A DNA stretch of 64,000 bases from Adineta vaga (taxonomy: Eukaryota > Animalia > Rotifera). Below are positions 26,478 through 51,098 of this stretch, piece after piece (within the stretch, counting starts at the first letter, position 1; every line of letters starts with the position of its first letter). Location of the stretch: assembly GCA_021613535.1 (NCBI GenBank), contig CP075493.1, forward strand, positions 9,362,001 to 9,426,000. The letters run 5' to 3'. Under the pieces are notes generated by a model. That model did not search any database and was not told the DNA's origin. It saw only the letters and a program-made list of their open reading frames with translations. Position numbers and translations under genes: made by a program.

Positions 26478-26783
26478 ATGTTGAGAGAAGTTATTACCAG
26501 TAATAATTCTTCAATCGATTGTATTCGTGAAAATTGTACAAATGAAATATCAACATCACTTGCTACAAATACAATTTCCAATTCTTTTCTTATTATATTA
26601 ATCTTATCAATTTTATGTTTATTTGGTGTTTGTTTTATGCTTTTTGGTCCATTACAACGATCCGAAGCTCATAAACGTGTGGAAAATTTTACCTTTGGTC
26701 GTCATCCAATTTTTAATGTTGATCATCGAGAACAATCAACAGCGACACGTTATGAAGAATCCATGGAATTTTCTAATATTTGA
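26478..26783 (+). CDS. Small single-pass membrane protein of unknown function (101 aa)
   Basis: ORF preceded by an AG acceptor; N/T/S-rich N-terminus with NxS/T sites, one TM helix FLIILILSILCLFGVCFMLF and a polar C-tail. Confidence 0.6.
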   Translation: MLREVITSNNSSIDCIRENCTNEISTSLATNTISNSFLIILILSILCLFGVCFMLFGPLQRSEAHKRVENFTFGRHPIFNVDHREQSTATRYEESMEFSNI

Positions 26784-26908
26784 ACAAGTGATTTGTTTTT
26801 GTCCTATTTTTTGTTTTATTATTTGTTATAAAAATAACAAAACATGTCGATTGAAATGAAGAGATAACAAACAAAAACTGGCATATGATGTTTTCCATTG
26901 ATAAATCG

Positions 26909-27830
26909 TTATTGAAAAAATGAATCATTTTGATACTGACGACATTCAACAGAATCAAGTTTTGTATTAGCCGTTGAAATATCATTTTGAATAGCAGCAA
27001 CTAATTCATCTAAATCAAAGATTTCAAGTCAGAAAAATATCTTATTATAGCTCCTTAATTAAAGAGAAGAAAATATGACGTCATTGTCAGCTTCTAAATT
27101 AGAGTACTTAATAATAGAGTAAGAAATACTTTTCTAATCGTTTGTCAAATCCTACGATACTCCCATCGCCAATGTTTTGCGATATATTCTTCTGGGTACA
27201 ATTTTCTTTCCAAATAATCTATTAAATAACTATATTTAGTTTGTATACTATCCAGTTACAAAATATCAGCGTTCTAAATTTGCTCATCTCTTTTAAAGTC
27301 AAGTGATGGATTCTTTGAATTAAATGATTTCATATTCGATGACATACTTGCATTATTAAATGTTGTCATCTTTCGTATTTCTCCAAGAAGAACTATTTTT
27401 AATGTTTCACCATAGAAATCTTCTAGAAATTCATGTAATATATGTGTTTCCTAAATAGATTTATAAGTTTATCAAACTTTAATATGATAAAGTTTTGTCT
27501 TACCATCGTCTTCTTTTCACCATTATAAAACGGATTGGTTCCAACACTAGTCACCATTTTATAGATTTCATTGTTACTCTTCGTTAATAATTTAGCCCAA
27601 CCATAATATACACCTTGATAGATAGATGATGGCAATTTTTCTACTGTTTCTTCATCGAAATTTGCTAAAATTTAACGAAGAAATGTGTATAAGCTTTTTT
27701 TTGTTTTTTCAAACAAGAAAACTTGCCTAAAGCTATCAATACCTGTTGGACAACCAAGTTCTTTACTACCACGACCGAAACCATGAACAATCGTACCAGA
27801 TGTAAAGTATGGAAATGGTGAATTTGTCAT
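26909..27830 (-). CDS. RFK: Riboflavin kinase (4 exons)
   Basis: MTNSPFPYFTSGTIVHGFGRGSKELGCPT/ANF...GVYYGWA...MVTSVGTNPFY...ETHILHEFLEDFYGETL...NELVAAIQNDISTA...FFQ*; PTAN motif split by an intron. Confidence 0.96.
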
Positions 27831-29173
27831 GATCTAAAACTAAAATTCCATGGATAAGATATCGTTTAAATGAATAACCGATGTAGAATATCATTCATTT
27901 GTCAAGTGACCTTAAATCTCAATACTGACTTTAACAGATGTGATTTATTTCCATAAATGGTTATTGATATAACAAGCATGATTTCATATAACGGATCAGA
28001 TTTATTCTTATCCAAAAGAATTATGTTTCTCCTTGTTGATGTAATGAATAACGAAAGAACGAAATCAGTAGTTTGTTAAGGTGATCGTGATCGATCGATT
28101 GTTTAATCATTTAAGGTGATTTCACTGATGATTTGGTTGGTTCGTACATTTTCATAGATGACTGATTGTACAAAAGAGGTCATTATACGTCAAGTTCACG
28201 TTTGATTTTTTTATGTTCTTAGTTGGTTTTTTTCTAATATCTATCGTCAATGTATTTTGCAAAGTATTTCACCACATAATGATAACTATAACTAACGTGA
28301 TTCTTTTTTTGTAAATTCAAAACTACTCATTTATTAAATCTAATCTGGAGAAACAGAACATCTGTTATGCTATCAAATTTGTTAAATATGCCCGATGCTA
28401 TATATAGTTATGACAAATTGTAAAGCGTATTTCAATTAACTATATGATAATAGTTTTGCAGGAGATGACAACTTATTTTGTAATCATCAAAAAAAGACAT
28501 GAAACGAGTAAAGTTTATTACGCATACTTTTCGTTTATATTCATTGGTGTTACGTAATATGGCGTCGAAAAAAACATGTAACAAGGTCTTTTTCAATCGT
28601 CTATGATTAATCTTTATTTGTGCTACGATTGAATGCCTTATATTTGCGATTACCTTGTTTGATAGCTAGAAAAACAAACTTTCAATTAAAATGATTTATA
28701 TAAAATAGATAAAAATGTTACATCAATATGAATTTAGTAACATAACGTTTATTATGTTCATTAATCACAAGTTTCTGTTCTTTTTCATGATAATTATTAC
28801 ATTAAAAATACATATTTTCTATGTTGATTACCTGTCAATATGATGATCTAAAAAAATCAGTCGATATGAACGATTTTTACCCGTAGACATTCATTATATT
28901 GATGTTTGACAATGACAACTATATGTTAACAGAAGAAAAAATAGAATAAATCAAGGTGAATATATAGCTCGCAGCTCTTTTTCTTCAGAGTGCCAGCGTA
29001 GACTTCGAACTAGAAATGACTGACTGACTAATTTGACTAGAAACACATATATTATGAAATTCTGAAGTCAATAGAAAGAACGCGTTATTTCATATATAAT
29101 TTATTAAAACTGTATAATGAAAACTTAAGAAAAAAAATTCAAAATATTCTATAAATTAGTTAATGTAGGAGTT

Positions 29174-29786
29174 TTATCGCATGAAAACTCGAGGTATTCG
29201 ACGAAGGTGACGACGAGCTGATACATGCACTATAATATACACGATAATAAAAGCTAAACAGAGAACCAATTCGATACAAGCAAATGCCAATTGTGCACTG
29301 AGAATCTTTGGTTTTTCGAATAGACTCGGCAAATATTCTTTTCCATCTTGAACAGCTTTTGCATCTAAACCAATCAAAATAACAGCAAAACAAGCAGCAA
29401 TAATCGTTGTAATCAAAGCAATTTGAGCCCATAGACGAACACTAGGCATATAATCTAAAGAGAATTTTTTTAATTAAACATATAAAAACATTTCATCCTT
29501 TACTTATCAATAGAATGATAACAGCCGCAATAGAAAAGAATACACTACACCAAATACCGGCACCGGTTGCTGATGTATTTCCAAAAATATCTTTATTTGT
29601 ACTTTGTGCTAATGATGCGACTTCTAAAGCGCCAATAACTAAAATACATATGATCATGCCAACTGCCAGAATAGTTGAAATAAGATACGGCCATCTTAAT
29701 CTCCATGCAATGTCAACTGGTGATCTAGATTGATATGGACCTATCGGACGACTTCTTCGAACATAATAAGGAGCACTGCCAAGCAT
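29174..29786 (-). CDS. Four-TM MS4A/CD20-like membrane protein (copy 1)
   Basis: Two exons (intron 29455-29503); four hydrophobic helices, with GAGIWCSVFF at TM2. Confidence 0.7.
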
Positions 29787-30346
29787 ATTCTTAATAGTAT
29801 TTGTACGTTAAATGATGATGATGATGTGAAAAAAGTGAGTGAAAGTACTACTATATATTACTCCAGGTCTTTGACGATGATCAACAATCAATGACGCATA
29901 TCCTTTTTCTCTGCTTTACCTTACGTTCTGATAAATGTTATTGATATTTTTAGCGAAGAATTGGTACGTGTGTAGGTATTTATATTTCATTAATTGAAGC
30001 CTATTAGTAGGAAAATATTGATGTACACACTACTAAAGAAAGAGAAATTTTTTTTTAACGAAACAAGGTTATCCTTCACACAAACTGTATAATTTGATGT
30101 CTATCTCAATAGTAAACACTCCTGTATCATTTATACGAGAATTAAAATACTATTGGTATGCGTTTGCATATCAAAATGAAAATAAAAAGAAAACTATATA
30201 ATTAATTGTATGATTTGTTCTAGTAAAAATGCAACAGAACATTTATGAGCAGAAAAAAAAACTATATTAAGCTATTAATTATGTTTTGATAAAATCGGTG
30301 GAAAACAAGCGAATGAAAGAGATAGTTATTAATACTTCATATGCTT

Positions 30347-30985
30347 TTAGTAATAGTCTGATGATATACGAGTTTCGGATGAAAAAAAGACGCTGATATA
30401 GATCATAAAAAATATGATACATTGTGTGAGAATGAATAGAGCGATTGAAAGAATAGCAATGATCAATTTATATTGAATAGGATATAAATCTTGATTGCGT
30501 TGAACTGAATTGGCTGAAAGACCAATGAGAACAATGGTGAAGAAGAAAGCTAATGTAACAGCAATTAAAGCAAATGTTGCTGCAATACGTTTGTTTCGTG
30601 TGAAAACTAAATATTAGAAAACAAAATCAAACAGATTCAAATCAATATAAAGAGAATGTTACATACTGATTATAAGTATACAAATAGAAGCCAAAAATGA
30701 TATAGATCCACACCAAATTCCAACACCAACTTTTGAAGGATCCATTCCTAACTTTTCGACATTGTCATCTTTATTACTTTCAATAGATACATTGGCGATT
30801 TCAAGGGCGATAACAGCTGCACTAGAGAACATCATTAAACTACCAAGAAGTACTGATCTGATAGTTGGCCATGTATCCAACCAATTTGAATCTAATACTA
30901 TTGGTTGGACTATTCTTGTTTTATGACCGGGATAACTATAAGAAAGTCCAGAATATGTCGGAAATAATACTTGTTGTGTCAACAT
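30347..30985 (-). CDS. Four-TM MS4A/CD20-like membrane protein (copy 2)
   Basis: Two exons (intron 30607-30666); WP...LE.A motif and GVGIWCGSISF; exon 2 IFTRNKRIAATFALIAVTLAFFFTIVLIGLSA...FFSSETRISSDYY*. Paralogous to 29174-29786. Confidence 0.7.
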
Positions 30986-31795: not shown

Positions 31796-34700
31796 TTATA
31801 AAGGACGTATACCACCGGATGGTTGACGAGCAAAATAAGGTCGTGATGTTATTGTAGGTGTTTGTTGTTGCTGTTGTTGTTGTGTTTGAGTAGGAGTCAT
31901 TGTTAAAAGTTCCTGTTGTCTCATTACACACCGACATGTACAATCTTTTTCTGGGCAAAATCGATGTTTTAATTCATCCGATGAAAACCATCCATGCATG
32001 TGTGTTAAATGACCACCATGACCACAAACAGCACAGAGAAAATGTTGACCTAAAACAGGTTGTAAACAAATTGAACAAATTATATTCGGTTTTGTTGCTA
32101 GTGCTGGTGCTGTTGTTGGTGGTAGTGTTGCTGCTACTGCTGCTGTTTGATTGAAGGGTGCTGGTGATTGACAATTATGATCAATTTGAGACAAGATTTG
32201 TGTGCGTCTGTAAAAATGTTTCCATCGATGTAATAAACATGCATAAGCATATAGAATAGGATCGTGATTATGTTCATTAACTAATTTGGATTGAATTTTA
32301 GTTTTTAAATACGGTGTTTGAGACATTGTTAAAAGAAACATACTAGCAGATTGAATATCACCATTAACAACATAACTCGAAACAAGATGTTTAATTAAAC
32401 CTAGAAGAAAGAAAGAAAACGGATTTATTTTATTTCTGAAATTTATTTACCTTGTGCAATTGGTGTTTGAAACCAAGAATCATTTGGATCTAAATTGGTT
32501 TGTATAGATAATAAACCACCAAGTAAACGCCAACAATGTGCTAAATCATCTTTACCCATTTCTTGTGTTATATGTTCATTGTTTTCACACATATCAATTG
32601 CATTTGTAAAATCAATTTTATAATCATCAGCTAATTTTCTACTCACAGGTAATAGAATGGAAACATCATAGATTGAAACAGTTGAAGGTGGATGAATCAA
32701 ATGACCAATAGAACGACGATATGATGCTAAACGTTGATGATCAGTAAAACTAGTTGCACCCATTGTCGAACGTACCGGTGCTGAAAACATTGGTACGCGT
32801 TGATTATTCGACATTTGTTGAATTTGAATTGTACTTGTTGTCGGAGGTCGATAACTTGATTGATCAATCGAAGTGGAATTTTCTCGACTTTTACCTACAG
32901 TTAAACTTGTTGAACGCATAGGTAAAGATTGCGGTCGATTCATCGTTCCATCATTTAATGTACTTAAAACCGTAGCTGAATTTGTTTGTTGATTATTCGA
33001 TATTCGACCAAAACATATCAGATAGGTTCCACCGGAAAAACGAGCTCCACATGTACGCCAACTACTTGGAGCGATGGATATATTAGACATCTGGCTATCA
33101 CTTGTACGTGTTGAAGATGATGAAACACCAAATACTCGATTCGATGGATGATTATTATTATTATTATTTGTACCGGAATTATTTGTATTTACTTGTGATA
33201 ATCCACTTAATGATTCGATTTCTGAATTTGTTAATGATAGATCACGCTTTTTATTTGCATTATTTATTGTCATAGCTGCAGCAGAAATAAATTTTTCTTC
33301 TTTATAGTAAATATCAAAAAGATTTTGTAATTTTATTAAACATTTATGTAAGCATAATTGACCATGATAGAAGCAATTATACGATGTTGCATCAAACATC
33401 GACTGCATACGATTTTGAAATATTTTAAATTGTTCACTATGATAAATAGTCGATGTTTTGAATCGAACAAATAATTGTGATATAGTTGGATAATGACGCG
33501 AAAAAGTAAGATAGATTCGAAATATAAAATTATTATCCAATGGATATTTACAACGAATTATACAGATACGACGTTGTTCATCTTTTCCTTCAATAGATAT
33601 ATATGGTTCATAGGTATCATGTAAAGAATTGAGTTCATTAGCAACTGATACTACCGTTACGGTATTATCACTTCGATCGGGTCTACAAAGTAGAAGAAAT
33701 TAATTATATCGTAATGAAAATAATTGACTACGAATAATTCAATCAGATTATATTGATATGAAATCTATTTATGTACTACTTACATCATTTGATAGTCACT
33801 ATTGTGACTTGTATCAGACGATTCCATCGTATTCGGTGGTGATACTGACATTCCTTGAAAAGCATTGTCATTATCTTCATCAGAATTTTCATTATCTGTC
33901 GCTTCGTCTTTGATAGCATCCATAGTCATTACTGTCGAACTACTTCGAGTCATTGGTTGTTGTCGAGATAGATTCGATGATGTTCGTGGTAAACTTATTG
34001 AATTTGATGAATCAGATAGACTGGTTTGTTTCTGTCGTGTTTGTTGATTATTCCAGGCTTGTCGAAATGTTGAATCCATATCAACTAAAGATAGATGTCC
34101 ATCACGACACCAAGTTAGTAAAACAAAACGATTCGTTGTGTCATCATTGAAACGTGCCGTTGAAGAATTTGTAAATAAATTCAGAAAACGAGCATTTGTT
34201 ACGAGACAAAAGTCAACAATTGATGTTGGAGTGGTTGTTAATATATGATCAGTCAAGGGTCTTAAATATTGATCTTCATCACAACGCCAACCAACAAAAC
34301 CATATGTGGCGGACATAGTATCACGAGCGGCACAAACAAATAGATTATCATAACCGGTTGTATGAATCTAATTTGAAAGCAGAAGAAGAAGAAAAAAACC
34401 CAATGTATTCATTTTTCTTTTTTTGAATTCACAAAAATAATTCATACTTTACTAAAAGCATACGAAGATTGTTCAGTTGGTAATGATTCAGCAATGTGTT
34501 GACCTTGTGCCGAAAATAATCTAATAGAATGATCTAACGAAAGTGTTGCAACTGAACGATTTTGTTTTGTCCAATCCATACTAATGATACGTTGCGTATG
34601 TTCTAAATCAGTTGAAGACAATAAGCATGAATCGGCTCGTCGTATATCATAGATTCGTATACATCGATCACATTGAACTGCTAATTGATTTGAATTATCA

Positions 34701-36373: not shown

Positions 36374-37225
36374 TTAGACAAGAGTAGTTGAACCATTAGG
36401 TAAAATGGCGCCTTGCAGACTGAGTGCTGCAGCTAATTGTTGAGGTGTAATTTTTGCTCCTAACAAATTTGAATAATTGAACATTGCTTGAGAGACATCG
36501 GTATTTGTCCAATCAGTTCGTTGTAATGATGCATAACTGAAATCAGTCTGTGAACAATTCGATTCAAGAAATGATGATTCATCCAAGATCGAATATGAAA
36601 AATTGCTTTGGTGTAGACTAACACGTTGTAATGTGATATTTCGAGCAACAACATTAACGAATTGCAAGTGATTATAAAATGAGCCAGGTGTAAATACGAG
36701 TGATGACAAATCTGCATGTGATATATTGATACGATTTTGAACACCACTATCAATTAATAATTGTATAAGTAAAATCTTTCGTGCTGGATCAAGTTGTCTT
36801 AAAGCATGTAATGTTTTAGTACGAATAACTAATGATACACGTTCATCATCGTTATCATTATCATCATCATGTATTTTAACAGTGTCTTCATCTTCATCAG
36901 ATGTATCATTGAAATGTTGTATTGTACTATATTTAAATAGTAAGTCAGATAGATCTTTTTCGTAAACATTCAATATCATTTGTTTTTGTTGATCATGTAA
37001 TAATTCCATGTCTTGCAAACGATTATTAATAGCAATTGTTTTTGAATTTTCATTTTGACGTTCACTAAGATTTTGTTGTTGTAATGGAAGAACAATTGTT
37101 AAAATACCAACAACAAGTGGTATAAAAAGTGTTGATATAAGAGTAAGCCATTCATATGCGGAATGATGTAAACATCCTCTACTTAGTATTGTTCTTGTAG
37201 AAGATGCTTCTTCCATAGGAGTCAT
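36374..37225 (-). CDS. Membrane-anchored pentapeptide-repeat protein, bacterial-type, intronless
   Basis: TM helix WLTLISTLFIPLVVGILTIVL; RTKTLHALRQLDPARK; A(D/N)L/F-type pentapeptides (HADLS, SNFSY, TDFSY, ASLQR, SNLLG); C-terminal ITPQQLAAALSLQGAILPNG. Confidence 0.85.
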   Translation of the reverse strand: MTPMEEASSTRTILSRGCLHHSAYEWLTLISTLFIPLVVGILTIVLPLQQQNLSERQNENSKTIAINNRLQDMELLHDQQKQMILNVYEKDLSDLLFKYSTIQHFNDTSDEDEDTVKIHDDDNDNDDERVSLVIRTKTLHALRQLDPARKILLIQLLIDSGVQNRINISHADLSSLVFTPGSFYNHLQFVNVVARNITLQRVSLHQSNFSYSILDESSFLESNCSQTDFSYASLQRTDWTNTDVSQAMFNYSNLLGAKITPQQLAAALSLQGAILPNGSTTLV

Positions 37226-37868
37226 TACTTGAAGTTCTACTATTGTAATAAGAACAAAAAAAGGAAGAATATTGCTATATGAATGATTAAACTATCTTTT
37301 TATATAAGCAAATAACCTTTTTCATTTTGTTCTATTAAGTATTGGGCATTTGAAAAGAGCACATTACTTCATGAAAATAATAGCACAATGTTATAAAAAA
37401 AAAGTAAATAAGAAAGAGCATGTACAAATCTTCTATTCACATGGTATACTTTTATAACGATAGAATGATAGATTGTAAGAGCATCAGATTAATCATCATT
37501 CCATTTTTCTTTGTAATCTTAACAAGATTTCCAATAGGCGATAGATCACTTTTATTGTCAGAACAAGAAAAACGCAAATTACTTATCTATTAGTCATCAG
37601 AAATCAATGATATTATATTCTATCAGATGTTCTTTACACCCACTATATTGCGTTTTACAGTTAACTTTAGTCAAAACATTATATTGATACGTTGTTAACT
37701 GAATGATAGTCAATTAAATTTTCGGTTTTGTTGTATTTTAAAAAGATAACAAAAACTAGGTTTTGTGAAATCCTGCTTGTATATTTGCTTTTCATAAGTC
37801 TATCATGTCGACGTAAAGTTGATGTTATCTCTTACCTACATTCTATTTTATTCTTGTCGACTTCGATA

Positions 37869-40267
37869 ATGCATCTTGTGCTAGTTTTGTTACTAATAGT
37901 GCAATGTTACTGTGATATACAAGTTTCAATAGATCAAATAAAGGGCGAATATAATGTTACTATTGGTAATCAAGTATGGCTTCGTTCTGCTAGTACTTCG
38001 CTGTATGTTAATAATCGATGGTACTCATCGAATAATGGTTCTCTTCCTTTGATTGATTCACGAATGGTTCAAGGGAATGATCCTATTTTAGGTGCATGGA
38101 ATGAAACTCAATTAATCTTTAATTTGACTCTAGATAGTACATCTGTTAATGTTACTGGTCAAATACGTCAATGGGATACTATACCAGCATTAACATTCCA
38201 TTTAAATACCGGTGGACAAGTATTAACGAATGATATTGTTCTCAATATGACGAATGTTCGAACAGTATTTCCATCGTTTAAAATTGAACAAATTGATACG
38301 AATGATCATCGAGGTTATTTTACTTTTGAAGGTATGTATTTGTTTTTCTTAATTTCTAGAAATTTGATTAAAATGTATGTGTAGGTGTAATGATGGGTTA
38401 TGATGAAATACATGCAGGTCTTTGGACTTCATCAAATACAGTTATTAAATCAGGTATGGAAGCAGGTCCTGTCGTACTTTTTAATCTAACTCAACGTGGA
38501 CAAAATGATGCATTAATTTTATCACCATTTTCCCAATTTATGGCTACTTCATTGAGTCAACAGAGTAATATCTTACAATATGGTGTGATGGGTTCTATAT
38601 CAACGATTCCAGCTAATTATAATCACTCAATGATTCTTTTTTATTCATCAAAAGGTATCAATGATGTTGTCCATCAATGGGGTGTTACAATGCAACGAGC
38701 ATATAATCGAAATAATCAATATCGTCTTAATGATATTACCATAAATTATCTTGGTTACTACACCGATGGGGGTGCTTATTATTATTACAATACAGAAGGA
38801 AGTTTGAATTATCAAGAAACAATTTTATCAGTTCATCGAAAATTAACACTTCCATATCATTATATTCAACTTGATTCATGGTTTTATTATAAAGGTTTAA
38901 ACGGAGGTGTTAGTCAATGGCAAGCAAGGCCAGATATTTTTCCTGATGGTCTTCCATTCGTGTATCGTCAAGTGGAAAACACTCCTCTTGCAGCACATAA
39001 TCGTTATTGGGCAATCGATACTGTTTATTCGGAAAAATATGCTTTTCTATTCGATAATATCAGTCAAATGTCTCTTCCAATTGGTAATGATACTTTTTGG
39101 ATTGATTTATTAAGTGAAGCATCAAATACATGGGGTCTTATTATGTATGAACAAGATTGGTTACACAAGCAAACATCAAATTTTAAACCATTACATACTG
39201 ATATTCTTCTTGGCAAACAATGGTTATTATCAATGGGTGAAGGAGCAGAAAAAGCTAATGTTAACATTCAATATTGTTCACCTTATCCTCGTCATGCATT
39301 ACAAGCTCTAGAAATACCACGAGTAACACAAGCAAGAGTTTCATCGGATTATACATCCACATATTGTTCGTCAAGAGAATCAATGGGATATTGGTATGAC
39401 AACGATGTTAGCAGATGCACTTGGTATAGCACCATTCAAAGATGTTTTCTGGTCGACAACGAATGAACCTGGATCTTCGTATCATCCAACTCCAATGGAA
39501 CCACTTCCGGATCGAGAAATTCTGATGGCAACTCTTTCAACAGGTCCTGTCGGATCAGGTGATGCAATTAATTATACTAACGTTGAACGTATCATGCGTT
39601 GTTGTCGAAAAGATGGATTAATCTTAAAACCAGATCGACCAATATCAATGATTGATTCATTCATTGCTGATTGGGCAGAAAACAATGGAAATAGACAAGG
39701 AGAAATTTATTCAACTCAAACAACAATGTAAAGTTATTATAATTTTGTAATATATAATACTTTGATTTTTGTTCTTATAGAAATAATCAAATATTCTACA
39801 TCATATTTGCATCTACAATGCAAAAAGACTATGTAGTTTATCCTTCTACAATTGGACTTCAATCGGGTATTATTTGGTCCTATGATAATGTCAGTCATTT
39901 TTTACCGTTTGATGATAATCATCCTCTTCACATAACAGCCGATAGCTGTGGTAATACTTCGTTTTGTCTATGGTATATTTCACCTCTATGGGAATTTAAT
40001 AATACCATACATACAAAGTATGCTCTCATGGGTGAATCGAATAAATGGACATTTGTTAGTCGACAACGATTTAGTACAATTGAGACTAATTTAGAAAAGA
40101 CTGAGACAACTATTACAATAGATGGTTCACCTTCAGAATTGGTTGCTTTAACAATCTATCAATCAGAAATCGGTATCGAATCTCTGGATTGTATTCTTTC
40201 AGCAACTAGCGGCCAAGCACGTTTGATTATTACAACATCGACTATTACATGTTTTGGAATTCATTAA
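37869..40267 (+). CDS. Secreted glycoside-hydrolase-like protein (putative clan GH-D TIM barrel), interrupted by a +1 frameshift at ~39357 in this sequence
   Basis: Signal peptide MHLVLVLLLIVQCYC; introns 38332-38384 and 39728-39780; motifs GYYTDGGAYYYY, YIQLDSWFY, FPDGL, YEQDWL, QYC, RVSSDY, PFKDVFW, LSTGPVGSGD, CCRKDGLILKPDRP; many N-glycosylation sequons. Enzyme class is inferred. Confidence 0.72.
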
Positions 40268-41108
40268 TTGAAATAGCAAGAGTTTACAATAGTTTTATTG
40301 ATCAACTTGATATTAATTACTGATTCTTTTGATGGTAAAAACGTTTTTTTAAATAAAATCTATCGTGTATTTTGTCATTTTGTATTCCGTAAAGATGAAT
40401 ATTGACTTTTTGATGGTTGGTATAAAAAGTGATCGAATACTGAGAATTTTATTTCATTATATTGAATGTATAATTTCTTTGATTTTTTCCCCCTATTATC
40501 TATTAGTAAGCAAACACTTGCTCTTGTGTGCATAATGTACGAAAAGAAAAATAGAAAGAAACGATAAAAAAAGTCGAAGAGAAAAACGTGCGCTAGAAGT
40601 GGAGTGACATATGGTGAAAAAGAAAAGGTAGAAACGAGGGGTATGTATATGTTTATTTTTATCTATAGAAAACATTGAAATTGTCGCTTACATAAGATTA
40701 GGAAAAAACGAGTAAAATAATCAGCATTCTCAAGATAATTTATCGTCTTTATTAGAAAACAATCATTGTTAAGTGAATGATTTTATTTTCTCGTACATAA
40801 ATAAAAAAGCAGGAATTATATAGGCAAACTTCGTTATTGGAAATTATCAGCGACGTACTTTTATCTTAAAGTATGAACGATAATTTTTAGAGTTACAAAT
40901 TCTATCTAGACTTCTCTAAAAGCATTGTTTCATGATAGATAAATAGTGCGGTAACCATTGCCTGAATTCTTTATCTACTTTAAGGAGCAACCTGTATTCA
41001 TATGTTATCTGAAAAGAACGTCTATTTATCTTCATATAAATAATAGTTCCCAAAATACTTTTCTTTTTGTTTAGTTTCAAATAACAGAAGAAAAAAAACG
41101 TCGTCGAT

Positions 41109-43514
41109 ATGATGAATATACGTTGGTTCTTATTTTGTAACTTTGTCATTTTTATTCATGCACAAACCGGATCGTTTCCTGATTGTAAATCAGGTCCACT
41201 TTCCACATTCCCTATATGTGATCAAAATCTTCCGTCTCGTCAACGAGCTTCTGACCTTATTAAACGTATGACGACAGCTGAAAAAATTACACAATTGGTC
41301 ACAACGGCTGCTGCTATACCTCGATTAGGTTTACCGAAATTTGAATGGTGGTCCGAAGCATTACATGGTGTTGCTTATTCACCTGGTGTTTCATTCGGTG
41401 GTGATCTACCAGCAGCAAGTAGTTTTCCAATGCCAATCAATCTTGGTGCAACATTTAATATGAGTCTTGTTCACCATATTGCCGGCATTATTTCAACAGA
41501 AGCACGAGCATTCAATAATGAAGGTCGTGCAGGATTAGTTTTCTTTACACCGAATATAAATATTTTTCGTGATCCACGTTGGGGTCGTGGACAAGAAACA
41601 CCCGGTGAAGATCCTTTTCTAACATCACAATATGTTTATGCATTAATCAATGGTTTACAACGTGGTGAAGATGAACGATATTTGAAAATAGCTGCTGATT
41701 GTAAACATTATGCAGCTTATGATTTAGAAAATTGGAATGGAACTGATCGTTTTCATTTCGATGCGCGTGTTAGTGATCTTGATCTTATTGAAACTTATAT
41801 GCCACCATTTGAAACTTGCATACGTGATGCAAAAGTTGCAAGTATTATGTGTAGTTACAATGCAGTCAATGGTGTTCCATCATGTGGTAATCAATTTATA
41901 CTTGAAACTATCGCACGGTATGGAAAAAGAATGCAAATAGTTACTTTTGTTTTTCACTAAAACAATGTTTGTATTTGTTTATTATCTAGTGAATCATATC
42001 ATCTCGATGGTTTCGTTGTTAGTGATTGTGGTGCTGTTGCAACAATTATGGATGGACATCATTATACATCAACGGTAGAAGATACGGTCGCTGTTGCTTT
42101 ACATGCTGGTACAGATCTTAATTGTGGCGATTTCTATTTAAAACATACACAAGAAGCATTAGATAAGAAAACAATTGTTGAAGCAGATATTGATCAAGCT
42201 TTAGAACGAACATTCAATGTTCTCGTTCGTCTTGGTTATTTTGATCCACCAGAACAACAACCATATCGAAAATTATCCCATGATGATGTTGATACAATTG
42301 AATCAAGACAATTATCATTACAAGCTGCTCAAGAGAGTATCGTTTTATTAAAGAATACAAATAAAGCATTACCATTGGATATGAATCAATTAAAGAATAA
42401 GAAAATTGCTTTAATTGGACCAACAGCCAATGCTACTGAATTAATGCAAGGAAATTATTATGGTAAAGCACCATTTTTAACTGGTCCAGTCACTGCATTT
42501 CAAGGAATAACTTTTGGTAAATCATGTTTGAATAAATAATTCTTCACCTAGTTTTATGTTTTGCTTTTCATTTAAGGTCATTCAATCAATGTTAGTTATG
42601 CTTATGGATGTAAAATTGCTGATGGTGATCAAAGTGGTTTTAGTGCAGCTATTGAATTAGCTAAATCATCTGATATCGTTATTTTCTTTGGTGGAATTGA
42701 TCAATCAATTGAGTCAGAAGGACACGATCGTACATCCATCGCTTTACCTGATGTTCAATTACTTTTGATTCAAGAGTTGGAAAAAGTCGTTCGTTCACCT
42801 CTTCATGTTGTCATCATGTCTGGTAGTGGTCTTGATCTTTCCTATGTACGTGATTCTAGTCAATGCGGAAGTCTTATTTGGATGGGCTATGCCGGACAAT
42901 CTGGTGGTCTTGCTTTAGCAAATGTTATGTTTGGTGATTATAATCCTGGTGGACGCTTACCAATTACAATCTATCCTGCATCTTATGTTGATGCTGTTAG
43001 TATGTTTGATATGCAAATGCGACCATCACCAACAAATCCTGGTCGAACATATAAATTTTATACTGGACAAGCTGTATATGAATTTGGTCATGGTCTTTCA
43101 TATACAACATTTCAATATACATGGTATAATGACACAACAGAATCTAGAATGTCAATAAAATCCTTGATGACAAATAATTATAATGAAAATAAAGTACAAA
43201 TTCATCTTTATCGTGTTAATGTAACCAATACAGGTTCGGTGGCAGGTGATGATGCTGTCCTTGGATTCGTCGTACCACCACAACGATCATTAAACGGTCA
43301 AACACCACCTTTGAAGAAATTATTCGGTTTTGAACGTGTTCATCTGAATGTTGGTGAAACAAAACAAATCTTCTTTCCATTTAATGCCCAATCATTATTA
43401 ACAATAGCACATGATGGATCGAAATGGTTAGAGCCAGGTGCATATCAAATTGTCATTGGAAAACAATCTATGCATACAATTCATTTGTATGGCAAACCAG
43501 CTCGATGGTCGTAA
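41109..43514 (+). CDS. Secreted GH3 beta-D-xylosidase / alpha-L-arabinofuranosidase (plant BXL / fungal XlnD type)
   Basis: Signal peptide; WWSEALHG, PNINIFRDPRWGRGQETPGEDP, KHYAAY, MCSYN, VVSDCGAV (nucleophile Asp), ESEGHDR (acid/base Glu region), PGRTYKFY, FGHGLSYT and a Fn3-like C-terminus; introns 41918-41989 and 42517-42576. Confidence 0.96.
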
Positions 43515-43835
43515 ATATATATTTGATCGAGAGACACGGTGCCTTTTTTTGCTTCTATAATTATGAGATTGCAGAATAAATAATGAATTCACAAAGAAAA
43601 CTGATTGATTATACTCATCTGTCATATTCGGTATATGTAGTAACTCTAACATCAGCACATATAATTTTGTGAGTCAATATTAAAATTACATCACATTTAT
43701 TTGATATACTATTCACTAGGTATATATAACAAAGGAAAAAAACATCATGAAAAGTACAACTGTAGAGATAAAAAGCATATCTATTAAATGATTATATAGA
43801 TATTACAATTTTCATTGACATACATGAAAACATCG

Positions 43836-44105
43836 TTAACAACAGCAATCATCATTGTCACAGAACGGAGATTCGCTGCAAAATGAACTACAACATGCAC
43901 CAATACATAAACAGCAACAGATTTGAGTTAAACAATCGGTAAGATTAGCCATGTTACAAATTGATGATGAATCGCTCTGACGAGTTGAATTCGATGTCGA
44001 ATTCATTGCAGGTGAAATTGGTTGAGATTGAGATTCACCACTGTTTGATAATTGTGATTGTTGAGTTATTCGATATTGTTTAGCTCGTGATATGTCATTC
44101 GACAT
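43836..44105 (-). CDS. Small protein with Cys-rich C-terminus (CYSTM-like)
   Basis: 89 aa; Q/S-rich N-half, then CLTQICCCLCIGACCSSFC...DCCC*. Confidence 0.6.
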   Translation of the reverse strand: MSNDISRAKQYRITQQSQLSNSGESQSQPISPAMNSTSNSTRQSDSSSICNMANLTDCLTQICCCLCIGACCSSFCSESPFCDNDDCCC

Positions 44106-44494
44106 TACGTACGTATTTTATCTATTGAATCAAAGTTTATGTTTGAGACGATAAATGAAAGCAGAATATGAAGAACATTATCGACCTCCCGCATACTCAC
44201 AAACGGCACGCAAAAACTTATCGAGGTAAAATGACATAAAAGAAGAAAGGACTGATTTACTTTTTTAACCAATCAATGTTGCGAAGTATTAAAAAAGTCA
44301 ACACATTCTATTATACTACATCCAGTATAGTAATATAAGAATGTTTAATAAATATTACATGTCTTCCATATGATGAAAAAAAAACGCTGTTGATTCATTT
44401 CTTTATGTCAGTATTTTATTTTTAATTGAAGGAATTCGTATAAAACAATAACTACACGAAAACAAAACAGTCAAATGTTATCGACAATATGCAT

Positions 44495-46669
44495 TTATAT
44501 TGGTGTAAATTCAATTTGAAATCGAAATTTTGCATCTTGTTCATAATAGATAGGAAATGCTGTATTCCAAAGATTATTATGAAGATTAATAAATAATCCA
44601 TTTTTTCCTATACCTTGACAATCAGGTAGAGAATTATCAAAATTTAACAAATAATCTGTTGAACCAATCGAAAGTAACGGAGCATCAAATGAATGAAGTG
44701 TAAAAACGACTCGTTCACTTTTATTATCATAAAAACGGACACCTTTATGCCCAATAGCATGTAATCGTCTTGATCCATAATCAACGATATTCGATGGATC
44801 AACATCATATCCAAGTACATCGATTTTCCATTGATTACATGTTTTTGAAATAAGAGGTAGGATTGGATTAAATTCTAACCAAATTGATTCCGGAAGACGC
44901 GTAGCCGTCTTATTAAACCACTGTAATTCAATGGATATAGTTCTTGGAGATCGTGCTGGAAATGTATAACTAATCCAGATCGTTCGACTTCCACCGTAGG
45001 TTTCAATAATTTTCTTTGGAAATGTCAGTTGAATAAGGAATGTTTGATTCGTATGATCTTTCCACATTGATACAAGTTTGGGAACAATTGTTTGACTGGA
45101 AGAATTTGTTAAACCTGGTTTAGCAAAATCACCACATGGTGGACCACAATCAGGATTAAATTGTAAATTAAAACGATCAAAATCATCATTTGAATAGGTT
45201 TTATATTGAATACTACCTATTGTATTATTAATATTTGAGAAATTGTTTCCTTGATTATCTTGAAGATAAACGATGGCACCTGTCGTATAATTAAAACCGA
45301 TAGAAAAAGATTTTGTTTGAAATAAATAATAATCTTTTGTTCGATTGATTGGTAGAATAATATGAGTAAATTGACTTAGATTTGGAAGTGATGGTTCAAG
45401 TTTTTTTAGAGTATTTCGAATAAGTTTAATTAACGAAGGATCAGAAGTATTTACTGGATATAAATACGAACGAGCTTCTTTCCAACCTTGTTCTAACAAT
45501 TGAAAATCACTACCATTTCGAACATGTGTAAATTCGTTATTGTGATAATTAAATGCGTAGTTTTCCGGTTTCAAATAACACCCTGTACATAAACCCCAGT
45601 TATGTTCAGGATTTTTCAATAAACGAAATGAATAATTATATAATGTGGATGATGATTGTTGATCAAGTAATAATCTTGATATTTGTCGATAAGCAGATTG
45701 TTTATAAGGATCAGCAGCTACACCATATAACCATGTTGATCCCCATTCATCTGTTATGACAGGTAATTGATCTTTGCATGAATTCAAGAGAGATTGACTG
45801 AATTTTTCAAGAGTACTTGCTGTAATTTCTGCATTAGGATAAGAAATTTTAATTTCTGACCAGACGCGAATAACCTCAGCTATATCATGCGGTGGTCCAG
45901 AATTATCTAATGTAAAATGATAAATCATTGCTTGATCAAAACCTGACAAAACAACATCTCCACCATAAATACATGATTCAGCGGAACAGGGTGTCGTTGC
46001 TGTTGGTTTATTATACATCATAACTAATAATTCTGTATTTGTTTGTTCGTGTTTCCACATAAATGCAGGTGGTAAATCAGCACCGCGACAATTGAGATTA
46101 ACACCGATATGAACGGATTTGATTCCATTTTCAGCAAATATTGGTATCGTACTTATCGGATGACCCATATCATCTTTATGTGATGCACTCGTTTTTCTCG
46201 TTTGATGAAAGCGATCATCTAATATCGCCGATATGCTTAATGACATATTAAATAAATTTTTATCCATCATCGGAATAAACATGGAAAATGCATGTGCATG
46301 CCAAGTAATATCACCTTGTTTAATTGCTTTTTCAACTAATTCAATTGTTGTACTATTGGGTCGTTCAGTGGTACATTGTGCAATATTATCGAAAAATTCC
46401 AGAAGTATCCATGGATGTGTGGTGAAAATGAAACGTTCTTCACCACCACGATCACGAAGTTGTTGTGCAAGATGTGCCGCATTTGGTAAATGTTCATTAA
46501 AATAGAGTGAACAAACATTCGCTGCAAAATTTGTAAAACCAACATCTAAATGTGTCATAGATACGACATGAACTTTTTTGATCCATGGATATGTAACACT
46601 TGATGAATTCGATTTTGATAATTGATAATAAATTAAGAAGAATAATAAGCAAAAAAGTAAACGAAACAT
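44495..46669 (-). CDS. Secreted DUF5054 / GH38-like glycoside hydrolase, intronless
   Basis: Signal peptide MFRLLFCLLFFLIYYQLSKS (ORF Met39); KKVHVVSMTHLDVGFT (HxD metal motif), GDITWHA, HKDDMGHP, DNSGPP, EWGSTWLYGVAADPYK, PEHNWGL, KTATRLPESIW, NLHNNLWNTAFP, the motif set of bacterial DUF5054 proteins. Confidence 0.85.
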   Translation of the reverse strand: MFRLLFCLLFFLIYYQLSKSNSSSVTYPWIKKVHVVSMTHLDVGFTNFAANVCSLYFNEHLPNAAHLAQQLRDRGGEERFIFTTHPWILLEFFDNIAQCTTERPNSTTIELVEKAIKQGDITWHAHAFSMFIPMMDKNLFNMSLSISAILDDRFHQTRKTSASHKDDMGHPISTIPIFAENGIKSVHIGVNLNCRGADLPPAFMWKHEQTNTELLVMMYNKPTATTPCSAESCIYGGDVVLSGFDQAMIYHFTLDNSGPPHDIAEVIRVWSEIKISYPNAEITASTLEKFSQSLLNSCKDQLPVITDEWGSTWLYGVAADPYKQSAYRQISRLLLDQQSSSTLYNYSFRLLKNPEHNWGLCTGCYLKPENYAFNYHNNEFTHVRNGSDFQLLEQGWKEARSYLYPVNTSDPSLIKLIRNTLKKLEPSLPNLSQFTHIILPINRTKDYYLFQTKSFSIGFNYTTGAIVYLQDNQGNNFSNINNTIGSIQYKTYSNDDFDRFNLQFNPDCGPPCGDFAKPGLTNSSSQTIVPKLVSMWKDHTNQTFLIQLTFPKKIIETYGGSRTIWISYTFPARSPRTISIELQWFNKTATRLPESIWLEFNPILPLISKTCNQWKIDVLGYDVDPSNIVDYGSRRLHAIGHKGVRFYDNKSERVVFTLHSFDAPLLSIGSTDYLLNFDNSLPDCQGIGKNGLFINLHNNLWNTAFPIYYEQDAKFRFQIEFTPI

Positions 46670-47056
46670 AATCCTTGAATTGGTGATAATGTCGCTGGTA
46701 TAGTTAACAACTCGCGAAGAGAGATAAGAACGAGAAGAGATAATTGTTTTTTCATGCATTGTATCAGATAAGATTGGTTTCATTGAATGATAAGTAAGTT
46801 ATGTTGATCTAATTCAAAATATGAAGAACAATTATCGATCGATTCATTTGTGAATTAACAATGTACAATAAAAACAAAGTGCATCATGTACGAGATGTAA
46901 TTAATATCGAAATAATTTGATCTGATCTTTCTATTACTCACTACAGCGTGTAGAGACTAACTTTTGTTTCATTGCCTATTAGAATTTAGATGCACTCAAC
47001 GTATGCTTTGATCGAAAAAGAAAACTAGAGGGTACTCGAGCTTCACTCTAGTACAG

Positions 47057-47647: not shown

Positions 47648-50600
47648 CTATGATGAATGTAATGTATGTCTGTAGGATTGAATTGTTCGAAAGATATTCC
47701 AAAGAAAAATAATCATTGTTAATAACAAAAGATTCCATGGGAAATTATTTCCACCAATAGTAAAACGTAAAAGAATATAGATGACAAAAAGGAGTACTAA
47801 TGTACGTATATCAGCAAAATGTCGAAAATTAATTTGTGCTGTTCGGATAGAATGAAATCGTTGATCATTTGGACCATAGAATAATTGACGAAAGAATGCA
47901 CCAAGAAAATCTGAACGATTATATAAGGAATTGATTCGATCAGCGTACTAAGAACAGAGAAAAGATGAAGAATTCAATGATGAAAGAAAATATAGATATA
48001 CTCGAAGATTGATGTTTTCGGACAATTGACGATTGAACCAAAGCAATGGACGAATTTCAAAAAGATTTGGTGGAGATAAAATTGGATTTTCTAATTCATA
48101 TGGTGAATAGGAAGTATTTAAAGATGTTTCAGTCATTGATGTTGATAAAGACTGAAAGAATAAAATAAATTCAATGAAAGAAAATGTTCGTTAACAAAAT
48201 CATACTTTATTTCCTTGAAATGATATATCTAATGGATGAGTTAAAGATGGTTCATCTTCATGAATTGTTGTATCGAATATATTTGGATCAACCTTGTAAG
48301 TGAAGTTTGTTGTTTTTTTTCTCTAACAATCTTATTTGTTTAACTTACGCGAAAAAGTTCCATAAATTTATTCTTTGTATTGGTTAATTGTTCGACAGTA
48401 TCTGAAGGTAGAAGTGGTTTAATTTGAACAGTTTTTGTTGTCGTTTGTGAAGGTTTTAAAAAAGGAATTTTCAGTAGAGCTCGTTGGAATAATTCACGAG
48501 CATTTGTTGAAACAATTTGTGCTGCTTGAGAAGTTCGATGCTTTTCCTCATCAGCTATTCGTTGATTTTCTTCTATTCGACGTTCATTTTTTTGAATAAC
48601 ACATGCAATTTTTCGTAAACAACCTAACATAATCGTTTGAGTTTCATCACACAAGATCGAATATGTTGGTCGAGGACCATCTGGTGATGATGGGGGAGAT
48701 ATACGTTGTTTATTCGATGAATATGGATTTGTATGAGAATACATTGCTATTTGTTCAGCTAGTGAGAAAAAAACGATTTCAAAAGAGCAAGAATCTCAGA
48801 TTAAATATTACCTTTTAAAACTAATGTAGAGAAATTCTTTGCAGAAAAAACCTAAGAATAAAGGAAACATCGTATTGAAATGAATGATGATCAAAATGTT
48901 AACTATACATTGGCTAATTTGTTGATCAATTGTGAAATGAGTGCATTTGTTAGATCTGTTTTTTGTAAACGATCAACAGCAAGTTGAAAGAGTCGACCGT
49001 AAAAAGGTAGATTATGTTCGACAAAATTGATATTTTCTGTAGTCATAATAGATTGATCTTGTGGTGTAGTATCTTGATCAGTTGTTGTTGTATCAAGTAG
49101 ATTGGTGGCTTTGTGATCATTCGAAAGTGTTTGTGGACCGAATCGCCATGGACGGATATAGGTATACCAAATAAAGAGAAGAGTATTGTAACGTTGATCG
49201 AGTGCACATCGAACAATACCAATTTGAAGAAGAGTATAAAGAGGTTGACGAACATAAGTATCGATGCATGTTCTACAAAGAAGAAAACAGATACAATACA
49301 TTAAAGAATTTATTATTCTTTTTCCACAAACCTTTTTAATGATTGTAATGGTACAAGAAGATTACGTTGTTCGAGTAAAGTCATGCCTGTATTTGCAAGC
49401 GAAGCATTATTTCCGCCAATACCAATTTGATATGAACAAAATAGATGAAGACGTTTAATAAACATTCGAATACAAAGCAAGTGAATATCGGATAAAGTAA
49501 ATTCCTAAAGAAACATAGATCATGACGGGTATCACATGCCTGGCATATTTTATTTACCTGAACAAGAATTGAACCACTATTCGTACCAAAGACCGATTTT
49601 GTTGGTTGAAATACATCAATTAGAAAAGCAACATAGGACTAAATGAAATTAAAAAGAAAACATTGAAATAATGAATCGTTCTATATTTTACTTTAATAAA
49701 ATAATCAATTTTCTTCATCAGTTCATTTGTATCTGCCGTTGTTGTTGATAGAACTGCAGGTTGTGATGATGGAAGTAGTGATGATGTTGGTGATGTATTC
49801 ATATTCATATTCATAGGTGTTCCTTCTCCATCATTACGTTGTTTGACATTCCCTCCAAATAGGTACGATTGTCGAATTGGACTCTTTCTGAAAAACAAAG
49901 CGATAGAAAATTGATAAAAGAAACATTCAGAAAATGATTTTTCTACTTTGGTGTTGTTTCGACAGGTATTGGTGATAGAAGACGTGAATCACCTACATGT
50001 GATGTTGCTAGAGAATTTGAAGTAGTTGTATTATTTGTCGGCATAAGAAGCAAACGAAATTCTTCGGCATCGACTAAATCAAGAAGTAGAAACATCCTAT
50101 TTGATTTTAGATATTTTTACAAACGTACTTGGTAGAAAAAGACATAAATACATTTCTAATATATTCAAATAAACAGAATCACTTCGCATTGGTCGTTCCT
50201 GTGTGAAAAAGAAAATAATAAATAGTTTCTTCGATTTTCTTTGTCTAAGGATTTTACTGTTGATTGTTGATCAGAAATCACATAAGAAAGTAAATGAAAA
50301 AGAAAATATTCAATAGGATCAAGTGCTAAAGATGTTAAATGTTGACCAGTTGTTGTCGTTCGTCCACGAACAATATCTGGTAAACATAAGGATGCTAATT
50401 TTGCACGTAAATGTAATGGTAAATCACTGATATTAAATTGAAATGTAAATTGTGGTGTATGATCCTGTAAACGAAGTAAAACTTTCCATAGTTCACCGTG
50501 CCAAGGTGACAAAAATTCTTGAATAATTGAAAATAGATTTGGACGATCGTTTCCAATATCACGTAATGACCAATCGAAGCGACCAAAACCGAATATTCGT

Positions 50601-50728
50601 CGAATTACATAAGGCAATTCAACATGAAGCTCTTGAACAGTCATTCGAGGAAGTTGATTAGTTAATTGAATACAGGCATCAATAGGACCTAGATCCAATA
50701 TGGAAACAAGAGAATGTCGAGTAAACAT
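47648..50728 (-). CDS. SMPD4: Sphingomyelin phosphodiesterase 4 (nSMase3)-like, multi-exon
   Basis: RRIFG...WSL; LDPIEYFLFHL; IWYTYIRPWRF; FVEHNLPFY; FEIRPLLWFNRQLSENIN; last exon INFRHFADIRTLVLLFVIYILL followed by the C-terminal hydrophobic anchor. Confidence 0.82.
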
Positions 50729-51098
50729 TTTCGATCTAAAATTTTGATGATAAAATAAAAATCTTGTTGTTGAACCAAAATTGAAACCACAAGCTACCAC
50801 AACTGAATGAAATTTTTGTATTCATATAGAATAATATATAAGAATCAAATCGATATATCCAATTCGAAGAATACAACAAAGATGGCAGTAACTTGCAATC
50901 AATTCTAACAGTCGTTCTAAGCTGATATATATATATATAACAAAATATCTGATTACTATTATCAAACGAAGACAATGTTACAAATTTTATTCTGAAAAAG
51001 AAAAGAAAACTATTTGGAGATATTGTTGATTTTCTCCATAGATGATTATCAAAATATAAACAAGATCGATGAAATTTTATTTTATTCCGATTTTGCCA

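Follow-up and report, generated by a model that had tools for sequence, protein, structure and literature searches.

Bdelloid rotifers are the classic example of animals that carry many foreign genes, and the foreign origin of their glycosidases is usually taken for granted. A very large repertoire of glycoside hydrolases (GHs) has been described in them, including expressed genes that came from bacteria and fungi (PMC4498783, PMC11258130), and 623 GH genes were reported for Adineta vaga (PMC4498783). The window analyzed here is a 64,000 bp stretch of A. vaga chromosome 1 (9.362-9.426 Mb; GenBank assembly GCA_021613535.1, contig CP075493.1), in which three unrelated secreted-glycosidase folds are packed within 9 kb between the genes WDR59 and SMPD4. 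The predicted enzymes are a GH36-like protein (hereafter gene A), a GH3 beta-xylosidase, and a DUF5054 protein with a GH38-like fold; a gene for a pentapeptide-repeat membrane protein lies beside them. The initial annotation had interpreted the cluster as an animal analogue of a bacterial polysaccharide utilization locus (PUL), and this interpretation is only partly supported, its functional part being without support so far. The best explanation, held with a probability of about 60%, is that independent exo-glycosidases of mixed ancestry, secreted or lysosomal, share a conserved neighbourhood, with no demonstrated regulon.

Each of the three enzymes has a described counterpart. The fungal GH3 enzymes PcBxl3 of Phanerochaete chrysosporium (7VC6/7VC7), XlnD of Aspergillus nidulans (6Q7I), and TrXyl3A (5AE6) share the three-domain order of the window GH3; PcBxl3 is collinear with it over the whole chain and is alike in the N-terminal FPDC motif, the nucleophile Asp, and the acid/base Glu. 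The window GH3 differs from the fungal enzymes in its location in an animal genome, its two short introns of the bdelloid type, its three copies in A. vaga, and an activity that is predicted. Arabidopsis RS6/AkaGal3 (7EXF), from the GH36 raffinose-synthase/alkaline alpha-galactosidase group, has the sandwich-barrel-sandwich architecture and the RASxD[YF] motif of the gene A family; unlike 7EXF, to which it is ~10% identical, that family has no Pfam model and stands on its own, with at least 2300 clusters from animals and protists. The GH38 alpha-mannosidases (Bifidobacterium Man38A, 7UFR; a Streptococcus enzyme, 2WYH; yeast Ams1; Golgi mannosidase II) show the same whole-chain fold as the DUF5054 protein (template modelling score (TM) ~0.6), and the N-terminal H-x-D and D-x-x-G-H motifs of the latter resemble the GH38 metal site and nucleophile, but the DUF5054 protein is only ~10% identical to them and ~300 residues shorter. 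As in a bacterial PUL, adjacent glycosidases of the locus belong to different families; unlike a PUL, the locus has no SusC/D-like transporter/binding pair, no regulator, and no single direction of transcription. It also differs from typical carbohydrate-active enzyme genes acquired by bdelloids, being mid-chromosomal rather than subtelomeric and having one enzyme of the three that is not foreign.

Predicted folds, catalytic residues, and ancestry of the three enzymes

All three translations begin with a short hydrophobic signal-like segment, in agreement with the secretion proposed initially, and retain their predicted catalytic residues. Their folds are unrelated, so the view that the cluster did not arise by tandem duplication was upheld.

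The GH3 protein matches PF00933 (1e-22), PF01915, and PF14310, all beyond curated cut-offs and in N-domain/C-domain/Fn3-like order, and its layout runs from a signal peptide through a (beta/alpha)8 domain and an alpha/beta sandwich to an Fn3-like domain. In the alignment with the crystallized fungal enzyme, residue 1 of that chain falls on SFPDC, the predicted mature end, and the three exons are collinear with PcBxl3 residues 1-251, 261-424, and 426-733 (E-values of 4e-94, 3.5e-43, and 1.5e-62, respectively). The stretches DGFVVSD and IESEGHDR align with PcBxl3 Asp267 and Glu470, which are the nucleophile and the acid/base of that enzyme (PMC8913315). By this alignment, the protein is predicted to be an XlnD/Bxl-type beta-xylosidase with the catalytic Asp and Glu intact. 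Exon 1 is ~61% identical to the basidiomycete enzyme (counted from the alignment over the first ~250 residues), whereas the best bacterial relative was 50% identical and most were at 39-48% in a non-exhaustive shared-peptide-pattern scan of 185,579 species genomes. Because the fungal identity exceeds the bacterial one, which is 50% at most, a eukaryotic, fungal-like type is suggested, with acquisition from a fungus as the simplest reading; the gene was probably acquired before the bdelloid radiation. A search with exon 1 (283 aa) found, among the matches listed, only bdelloid first-exon open reading frames (ORFs) from metagenomes, and an Atlas look-up gave only generic GH3 clusters. Two close GH3 paralogues (74-76%) are located on A. 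vaga chromosomes 1 and 3, and the genome also has many distantly related single-exon GH3 genes.

Neither the window exon of gene A nor a full-length paralogue matched any Pfam model, even at an E-value of 10, and the same limit gave no match to the Melibiase and Raffinose_syn models of GH36/clan GH-D. The fold was assessed using the AlphaFold model of an A. ricciae paralogue (P0186), which shares 49-63% identity with the window exons. This model (predicted local distance difference test score (pLDDT) of 93, predicted TM score (pTM) of 0.94) comprises an N-terminal beta-sandwich, a (beta/alpha)8 barrel, and a C-terminal beta-sandwich. Its top Foldseek match was the Arabidopsis RS6/alkaline alpha-galactosidase 7EXF (E-value 5e-21, TM 0.63), and further matches were a Flavonifractor GH36 galactosaminidase, other GH36 enzymes, GH97 enzymes, and a GH27 arabinopyranosidase; the earlier label of a clan-D-like barrel thus fits the paralogue model. 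The gene A family profile also reached 7EXF by sequence (E-value 1.6e-4), with RASxDY aligned with RASDDF.

Family-invariant residues include the Asp of LDSWW, YEQDW, and RASxDY. In the window protein, the predicted catalytic residues are the Asp of YEQDW and the Asp of RVSSDY, together with the Asp of LDSWF, and the consensus residue is present at 9/9 invariant and 53/54 near-invariant family columns. The YEQDW Asp stands directly after barrel strand 388-393 of the P0186 model (predicted strand 4); PDB titles among the structural matches name a D383A nucleophile mutant, and the second Asp of the RASDDF motif in 7EXF (447) is presumably the acid/base. The Asp residues in YEQDW and RASxDY are predicted to be the clan GH-D catalytic pair after strands 4 and 6, and gene A is a candidate for a secreted GH36-like (clan GH-D fold) retaining alpha-glycosidase.

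An exhaustive search with the 358-aa central exon of gene A (E-value of 0.001 or better) yielded 2336 cluster representatives, mostly of 700-830 aa; no characterized member of this family was found. The best non-bdelloid relatives, with 43-47% identity, come from Ptychodera, Biomphalaria, Patella, Haliotis, Littorina, and Mytilus; the family is also present in Owenia and, among protists, in Entosiphon, Sulcionema, and Vitrella. In a 43-row tree, bdelloid gene A was placed within a 14-row group holding every named animal, apart from the protist group, with modest support for the animal grouping (Shimodaira-Hasegawa-like approximate likelihood ratio test values of 82 and 91). Since it groups with mollusc, annelid, and hemichordate genes, gene A is best read from this tree as an old inherited animal gene, not a foreign one. 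The Ptychodera homologue extends over 10 kb, with a dozen or more exons and a tandem paralogue, and a comparison of its intron positions with those of the bdelloid genes was uninformative, the boundaries being ~12 residues or more apart. Elsewhere in A. vaga, five paralogues of gene A have 59-65% identity to it and another has 36%; no GH3 or DUF5054 gene lies near any of them.

Two observations on the family were made in passing. Ptychodera flava carries two tandem many-exon copies (L008:10001-20442 and 25795-30442). None of the animal members is Pfam-annotated, and some are mislabelled as "non-lysosomal glucosylceramidase".

In this assembly, the reading frame of gene A is broken by one extra base relative to A. 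ricciae (window ACATCCACAT, A. ricciae ACATCT-CAT), which shifts frame 0 to frame 1. Read literally, the gene meets a stop at 39464-39466 and loses the last barrel strands and the C-terminal domain. Because the part downstream of the break is still conserved in the shifted frame, with a ratio of nonsynonymous to synonymous substitution rates (dN/dS) of 0.09 and K490 and G525 kept, the break can be attributed to an error in the assembly, to one allele only, or to a lesion of very recent date.

The DUF5054 protein matches PF16477 only and not the GH38 model PF01074, and no GH38 chain was found by sequence when the family profile was compared with PDB chains; some distant family members co-match PF01074. 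The model of the window protein (pLDDT 93.7, pTM 0.92) matched GH38 alpha-mannosidases in Foldseek over ~790 columns (E-values of 4e-22 to 1e-15, TMq 0.5-0.62), including Bifidobacterium Man38A-C, Streptococcus and Enterococcus enzymes, yeast Ams1, jack bean mannosidase, and Golgi mannosidase II. The top matches were 7ufr, 7ufu, and 2wyh (E-values of 1e-20 to 4e-22, TMq 0.56-0.62), and GH57 enzymes were lower in the list. The modelled fold is that of a GH38 alpha-mannosidase, which bears out the "GH38-like" label. Invariant or near-invariant positions in the family are His40/Asp42 (THLD), Asp166 (KDDMGH; D-x-x-G-H), D255/N256, and Glu355/His356 (PEHNWG); by motif resemblance only, H40, D42, D166, and H356 may be the equivalents of the GH38 metal site and nucleophile. 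A literature search found no paper mentioning DUF5054.

The start of the DUF5054 gene is ambiguous: translation from 46669, where the bdelloid-conserved start MFRLLF is situated, gives 724 aa and a secreted protein, and translation from 46783 gives 762 aa and a type II membrane-anchored protein, with a lumenal or outside-facing enzyme either way. The region 46670-46783 is open up to the ATG at 46783, and its peptide SYLSS-VVN is common to the A. ricciae model; the type II topology that such an N-terminal extension would give may be compared with that of Golgi mannosidase II.

Bdelloid DUF5054 orthologues, 65-84% identical, were found in A. ricciae, A. steineri, four Rotaria species, and Didymodactylos. 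A profile search added Arcella, Reticulomyxa, Capsaspora, Salpingoeca, two nemerteans, green algae, and Diplonema, as well as a probable bacterial group co-matching PF01074; no monogonont rotifer homologue was present in this search, which reached 25-30% identity. The description of DUF5054 as mainly bacterial does not apply here, the clade being eukaryotic, with Capsaspora, Salpingoeca, nemerteans, algae, and Arcella among its members. In a 76-row tree, the bdelloid proteins were sister to the sequence P0029, then to Arcella and a EukProt sequence, within a starred 16-row clade, and the nemerteans, Capsaspora, and Salpingoeca were placed elsewhere. P0029 comes from a microbial eukaryote and not from a rotifer, since its contig has 63% G+C and the adjoining gene has a mannose-6-phosphate-receptor repeat. 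The approximately unbiased (AU) test rejected a bdelloid + nemertean clade (difference in log-likelihood of 242, p 1.3e-38), a group that was named after the first tree was seen. As judged from the tree, DUF5054 probably entered bdelloids from a microbial eukaryote before their radiation, or else is an old paralogue. The only other A. vaga copy has 41% identity and lies 1.5 Mb from a second WDR59 copy on chromosome 4.

The proposal that the three enzymes were independently acquired therefore stands in part: GH3 is fungal-like and DUF5054 groups with microbial eukaryotes, but gene A groups with animals. Neighbouring "foreign-looking" glycosidase genes can thus have three histories, namely animal, fungal-like, and protist-like. 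Both uncharacterized families have clear catalytic candidates, and they are the most useful by-product of the analysis: one lead is a large Pfam-less GH36-like family in molluscs, annelids, hemichordates, rotifers, and protists, and the other is DUF5054 as a putative compact GH38-fold enzyme family widespread in eukaryotes.

Gene order in bdelloids and the status of the cluster

In two independent A. ricciae assemblies, the gene order SMPD4 - DUF5054 - GH3 - gene A - pentapeptide - WDR59 is the same as in the window. In Rotaria sordida, SMPD4 - DUF5054 - GH3 extends to the end of the examined locus, and in Rotaria sp. Silwood1, the 9.9 kb upstream of GH3 contain neither gene A nor a pentapeptide gene. 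The environmental bdelloid contig L004 contains SMPD4 - DUF5054 - GH3 - pentapeptide - GH76 - WDR59, without gene A, and the environmental contig L006 contains AASS - Acatn - SMPD4 - DUF5054 - GH3, followed by a polycystin-type channel gene. In the environmental contig L005, DUF5054 is situated elsewhere and lacks GH3, but a gene A paralogue and a GH2 gene are found at a distance of 8.5 kb. What is old is the pairing of DUF5054 and GH3 beside SMPD4, and gene A is present at the site only in Adineta. Linkage in related species thus holds beyond Adineta for the DUF5054-GH3 pair, but the arrangement of all three enzyme genes was found in Adineta alone. Conservation extends to the flanking Acatn-SMPD4-AASS block; because these core genes are equally well conserved, the DUF5054-GH3 linkage does not exceed background microsynteny, and the conserved adjacency at the locus is no stronger than background synteny. 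Elsewhere in the A. vaga genome, the paralogues of the three enzyme genes are dispersed and unclustered.

Further details were noted on the environmental contigs. The GH76-type gene of L004 (L004:16672-18131) lies between the pentapeptide gene and WDR59, and Adineta gene A lies on the other side of the pentapeptide gene; the slot beside this gene seems to accept glycosidase genes. On L005, a Ty3-type retroelement and a cathepsin-like gene are nearby, and the contig represents a second co-occurrence of the two uncharacterized families.

According to the preferred explanation of independent enzymes, three separately promoted secretory-pathway exo-glycosidase genes would adjoin one pentapeptide membrane-protein gene from a large family. 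In the gut lumen or lysosome, the enzymes would most likely each remove their own kind of terminal sugar from glycans that were eaten or endocytosed. The adjacency would be historical: DUF5054 and GH3 would have become neighbours beside SMPD4 early in bdelloid evolution, with the GH36-like copy at the site only in Adineta and the order held by the same microsynteny as the flanking core genes. Of this scheme, the folds, catalytic motifs, purifying selection, synteny pattern, and tree positions are observed; enzyme activities, cellular location, the direction of transfer, and the absence of co-regulation are deduced.

The setting of the locus was compared with that of a regulated unit. Foreign genes in bdelloids concentrate in subtelomeric regions (PMC11258130), and the locus is outside the subtelomeric zones, with its position at 9.4 Mb on a chromosome of no less than 17.3 Mb (same-chromosome matches extend to 17.27 Mb). 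No PUL-type sensor/regulator, glycan-binding, or transport genes were found among the neighbours (WDR59, SMPD4, Acatn, AASS, HSP90, and a cation-efflux gene), where only the pentapeptide membrane protein has no assigned role, and no shared transcription unit for the enzymes is evident from gene orientation and spacing. Gene A is followed in tandem by GH3 after 841 bp, and GH3 and DUF5054 are convergent, with 980 bp between them, so that no single transcript can cover the enzymes. Random placement of the 623 reported GH genes among roughly 49,000 gene models, the number assumed here for A. vaga, gives ~8 adjacent GH pairs and ~0.1 triples. A GH pair is unremarkable on this scale; the triple is mildly unusual, but it was chosen after the fact and is specific to one lineage.

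Several observations weigh against the explanation of independent neighbours. A triple of unrelated glycosidases remains rare under random placement (~0.1 expected), and the DUF5054-GH3 pair is kept in 4/5 of the independent bdelloid loci open to examination. On L005 (278-1571, 10001-12169), less than 9 kb separates a DUF5054 copy from a gene A paralogue and a GH2 gene, a co-occurrence that hints at more than chance. The origin ascribed to GH3 rests on identity values, not on a tree with plants, fungi, and other animals.

Alternative explanations

The most probable alternative, itself unlikely, is that the DUF5054-GH3 pair alone is functionally coupled, the two enzymes acting in sequence on one substrate. 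A candidate would be the beta-1,2-xylosylated (pauci)mannosidic N-glycans of glycoproteins from algae, plants, or invertebrates, in which the mannosidase-like DUF5054 enzyme would expose xylose for GH3. The pair is adjacent in A. vaga, A. ricciae, R. sordida, L004, and L006, both genes have very low dN/dS values, and a Bacteroides GH3 beta-1,2-xylosidase cleaves the xylose of plant N-glycans only after alpha-mannosidase action (PMC9522356). Against this coupling, the closest characterized GH3 relative, PcBxl3, is a xylan/xylo-oligosaccharide enzyme (PMC8913315), DUF5054 has no known substrate, its L005 copy has no adjoining GH3, and the flanking core genes are conserved equally well, so linkage alone proves little. 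An extended form, proposed by analogy and quite unlikely, would make the pair, joined in Adineta by the GH36-like enzyme, a selected digestive module with an obligatory sequence of action on xylosylated mannose-rich glycans. If such a coupled module were true, it would be the animal counterpart of the Bacteroides alpha-mannosidase-then-GH3 step in plant N-glycan loci, and the linkage would be the first substrate clue for the two uncharacterized enzyme families.

It is likewise doubtful that no transfer took place, in which case GH3 and DUF5054 would, in the same way as gene A, be ancient genes of eukaryotes or animals, kept by bdelloids and lost in most animals. The presence of DUF5054 in Capsaspora, Salpingoeca, and nemerteans would suit this history, and gene A demonstrates that "foreign-looking" glycosidases of the locus can be old animal genes. 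The bdelloid DUF5054 clade is nevertheless apart from nemerteans and holozoans in the tree, with a bdelloid + nemertean grouping rejected by the AU test, and joins the 63% G+C microbial eukaryote and Arcella, a monogonont homologue is absent from the profile search described above, and GH3 has its high identity to the basidiomycete enzyme.

A selected, co-regulated polysaccharide-degradation island of three glycosidases and the pentapeptide gene, that is, the animal PUL analogue built from independently acquired foreign genes, is improbable. The packing of three unrelated secreted folds into 9 kb, the identical order in A. ricciae, the conserved non-coding blocks in the spacers, and the low number of such triples expected by chance are in its favour. 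It conflicts with the animal descent of gene A and the absence of this gene from the locus in Rotaria, L004, and L006, with the convergent GH3 and DUF5054 genes and a separate spacer for each gene, with the lack of any PUL-type regulator, transporter, or binding-protein gene, with paralogues that are not co-clustered, and with the broken frame of gene A in this assembly.

An assembly chimera, named at the outset as an outcome that would undo the cluster, or contaminant DNA can be dismissed, given the uniform G+C across the window (29-34%), the spliceosomal introns in the genes, and the synteny results that refute it, both independent A. ricciae assemblies having the same order and four other bdelloid contigs part of it.

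Gene layout, selection, and neighbouring genes

The A. vaga assembly consists of six pieces with a total of 100.8 Mb. The features of the locus are listed in Table 1. WDR59 and SMPD4 flank the cluster as annotated initially, but four genes (pentapeptide, gene A, GH3, and DUF5054) instead of five were found between them, as in the A. ricciae annotation. No fifth gene was detected, the remaining ORFs in the gaps being at most 89 aa; the GH3-DUF5054 gap, which holds the 89-aa ORF, showed no conservation in A. ricciae, and blastn of the intergenic pieces revealed just short conserved DNA blocks in the other gaps. The four genes have zero to two coding introns each (none in the pentapeptide and DUF5054 genes, two each in gene A and GH3).

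Table 1. Features of the WDR59-SMPD4 interval of A. vaga chromosome 1 (window coordinates; CDS, coding sequence).
Feature	Position	Strand	Details
WDR59	up to ~36.0 kb	-	RING domain zf-RING_16 at 31796-32341
Pentapeptide gene	36374-37225	-	single intronless ORF, 283 aa; PF00805 (7e-10), PF13599
Conserved block in the pentapeptide/gene A spacer	37349-37469		76% identity to A. ricciae (blastn)
Gene A	37869-40267	+	CDS 37869-38331, 38385-39727, 39781-40267; introns 38332-38384, 39728-39780; defined by tblastn with homologues and splice sites
Frame break in gene A	39354-39360	+	one extra base vs. the A. ricciae orthologue (DNA alignment with L001)
Conserved non-coding block, 0.4-0.6 kb 5' of the GH3 start	40523-40708		blastn vs. 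L001, L002, L003
GH3 gene	41109-43514	+	CDS 41109-41917, 41990-42516, 42577-43514; introns 41918-41989, 42517-42576; 756 aa
DUF5054 gene	44495-46669/46783	-	single intronless ORF; PF16477 (4e-30)
SMPD4	48903-49301, 50165-50800		ORFs; PF14724

The dN/dS values between A. vaga and A. ricciae were 0.05-0.06 for GH3, 0.077 for DUF5054, 0.09-0.25 for gene A, and 0.13 for the pentapeptide gene, in comparison with 0.064 for SMPD4. All four genes are under strong purifying selection (0.05-0.25), similar to that on SMPD4, and are either still functional or lost their function only very recently.

The pentapeptide gene and gene A are divergent, with a 643-bp spacer. Within the conserved block upstream of GH3, a 45-nt core (40621-40665, ~450 nt 5' of the start) is 87% conserved at the equivalent spot upstream of GH3 in R. 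sordida (L003 19709-19751), and the block may be a candidate GH3 promoter or 5' untranslated region element. Rfam gave zero matches in 35.5-48.5 kb.

Beyond the cluster, HSP90 and the cation-efflux gene are the neighbours on the WDR59 side, and the acetyl-CoA transporter gene (Acatn) and AASS are those on the SMPD4 side. The second copy of WDR59, on chromosome 4 at ~3.0 Mb (G000:C4:2999155-3000343), is diverged (52-58% identity), and SMPD4 is single-copy; no second glycosidase cluster was found near the chromosome 4 WDR59 copy. A public Rotaria sp. Silwood1 model (P0033, 895 aa) fuses SMPD4 with the first ~80 residues of DUF5054, which is probably an annotation artefact of the close spacing of these genes.

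The pentapeptide-repeat protein is composed of a cytosolic N-terminal end, one membrane helix (~residues 27-49), an acidic linker, and C-terminal pentapeptide repeats. Orthologues were found in A. ricciae (76% identity) and on the environmental contig L004 (69%), and relatives occupy at least 38 places in the A. vaga genome; this is one gene of a large family in bdelloids that encodes membrane proteins in single exons. Its Atlas look-alikes were clusters from Chloroflexota, mostly, and Rotifera, which is a lead only.

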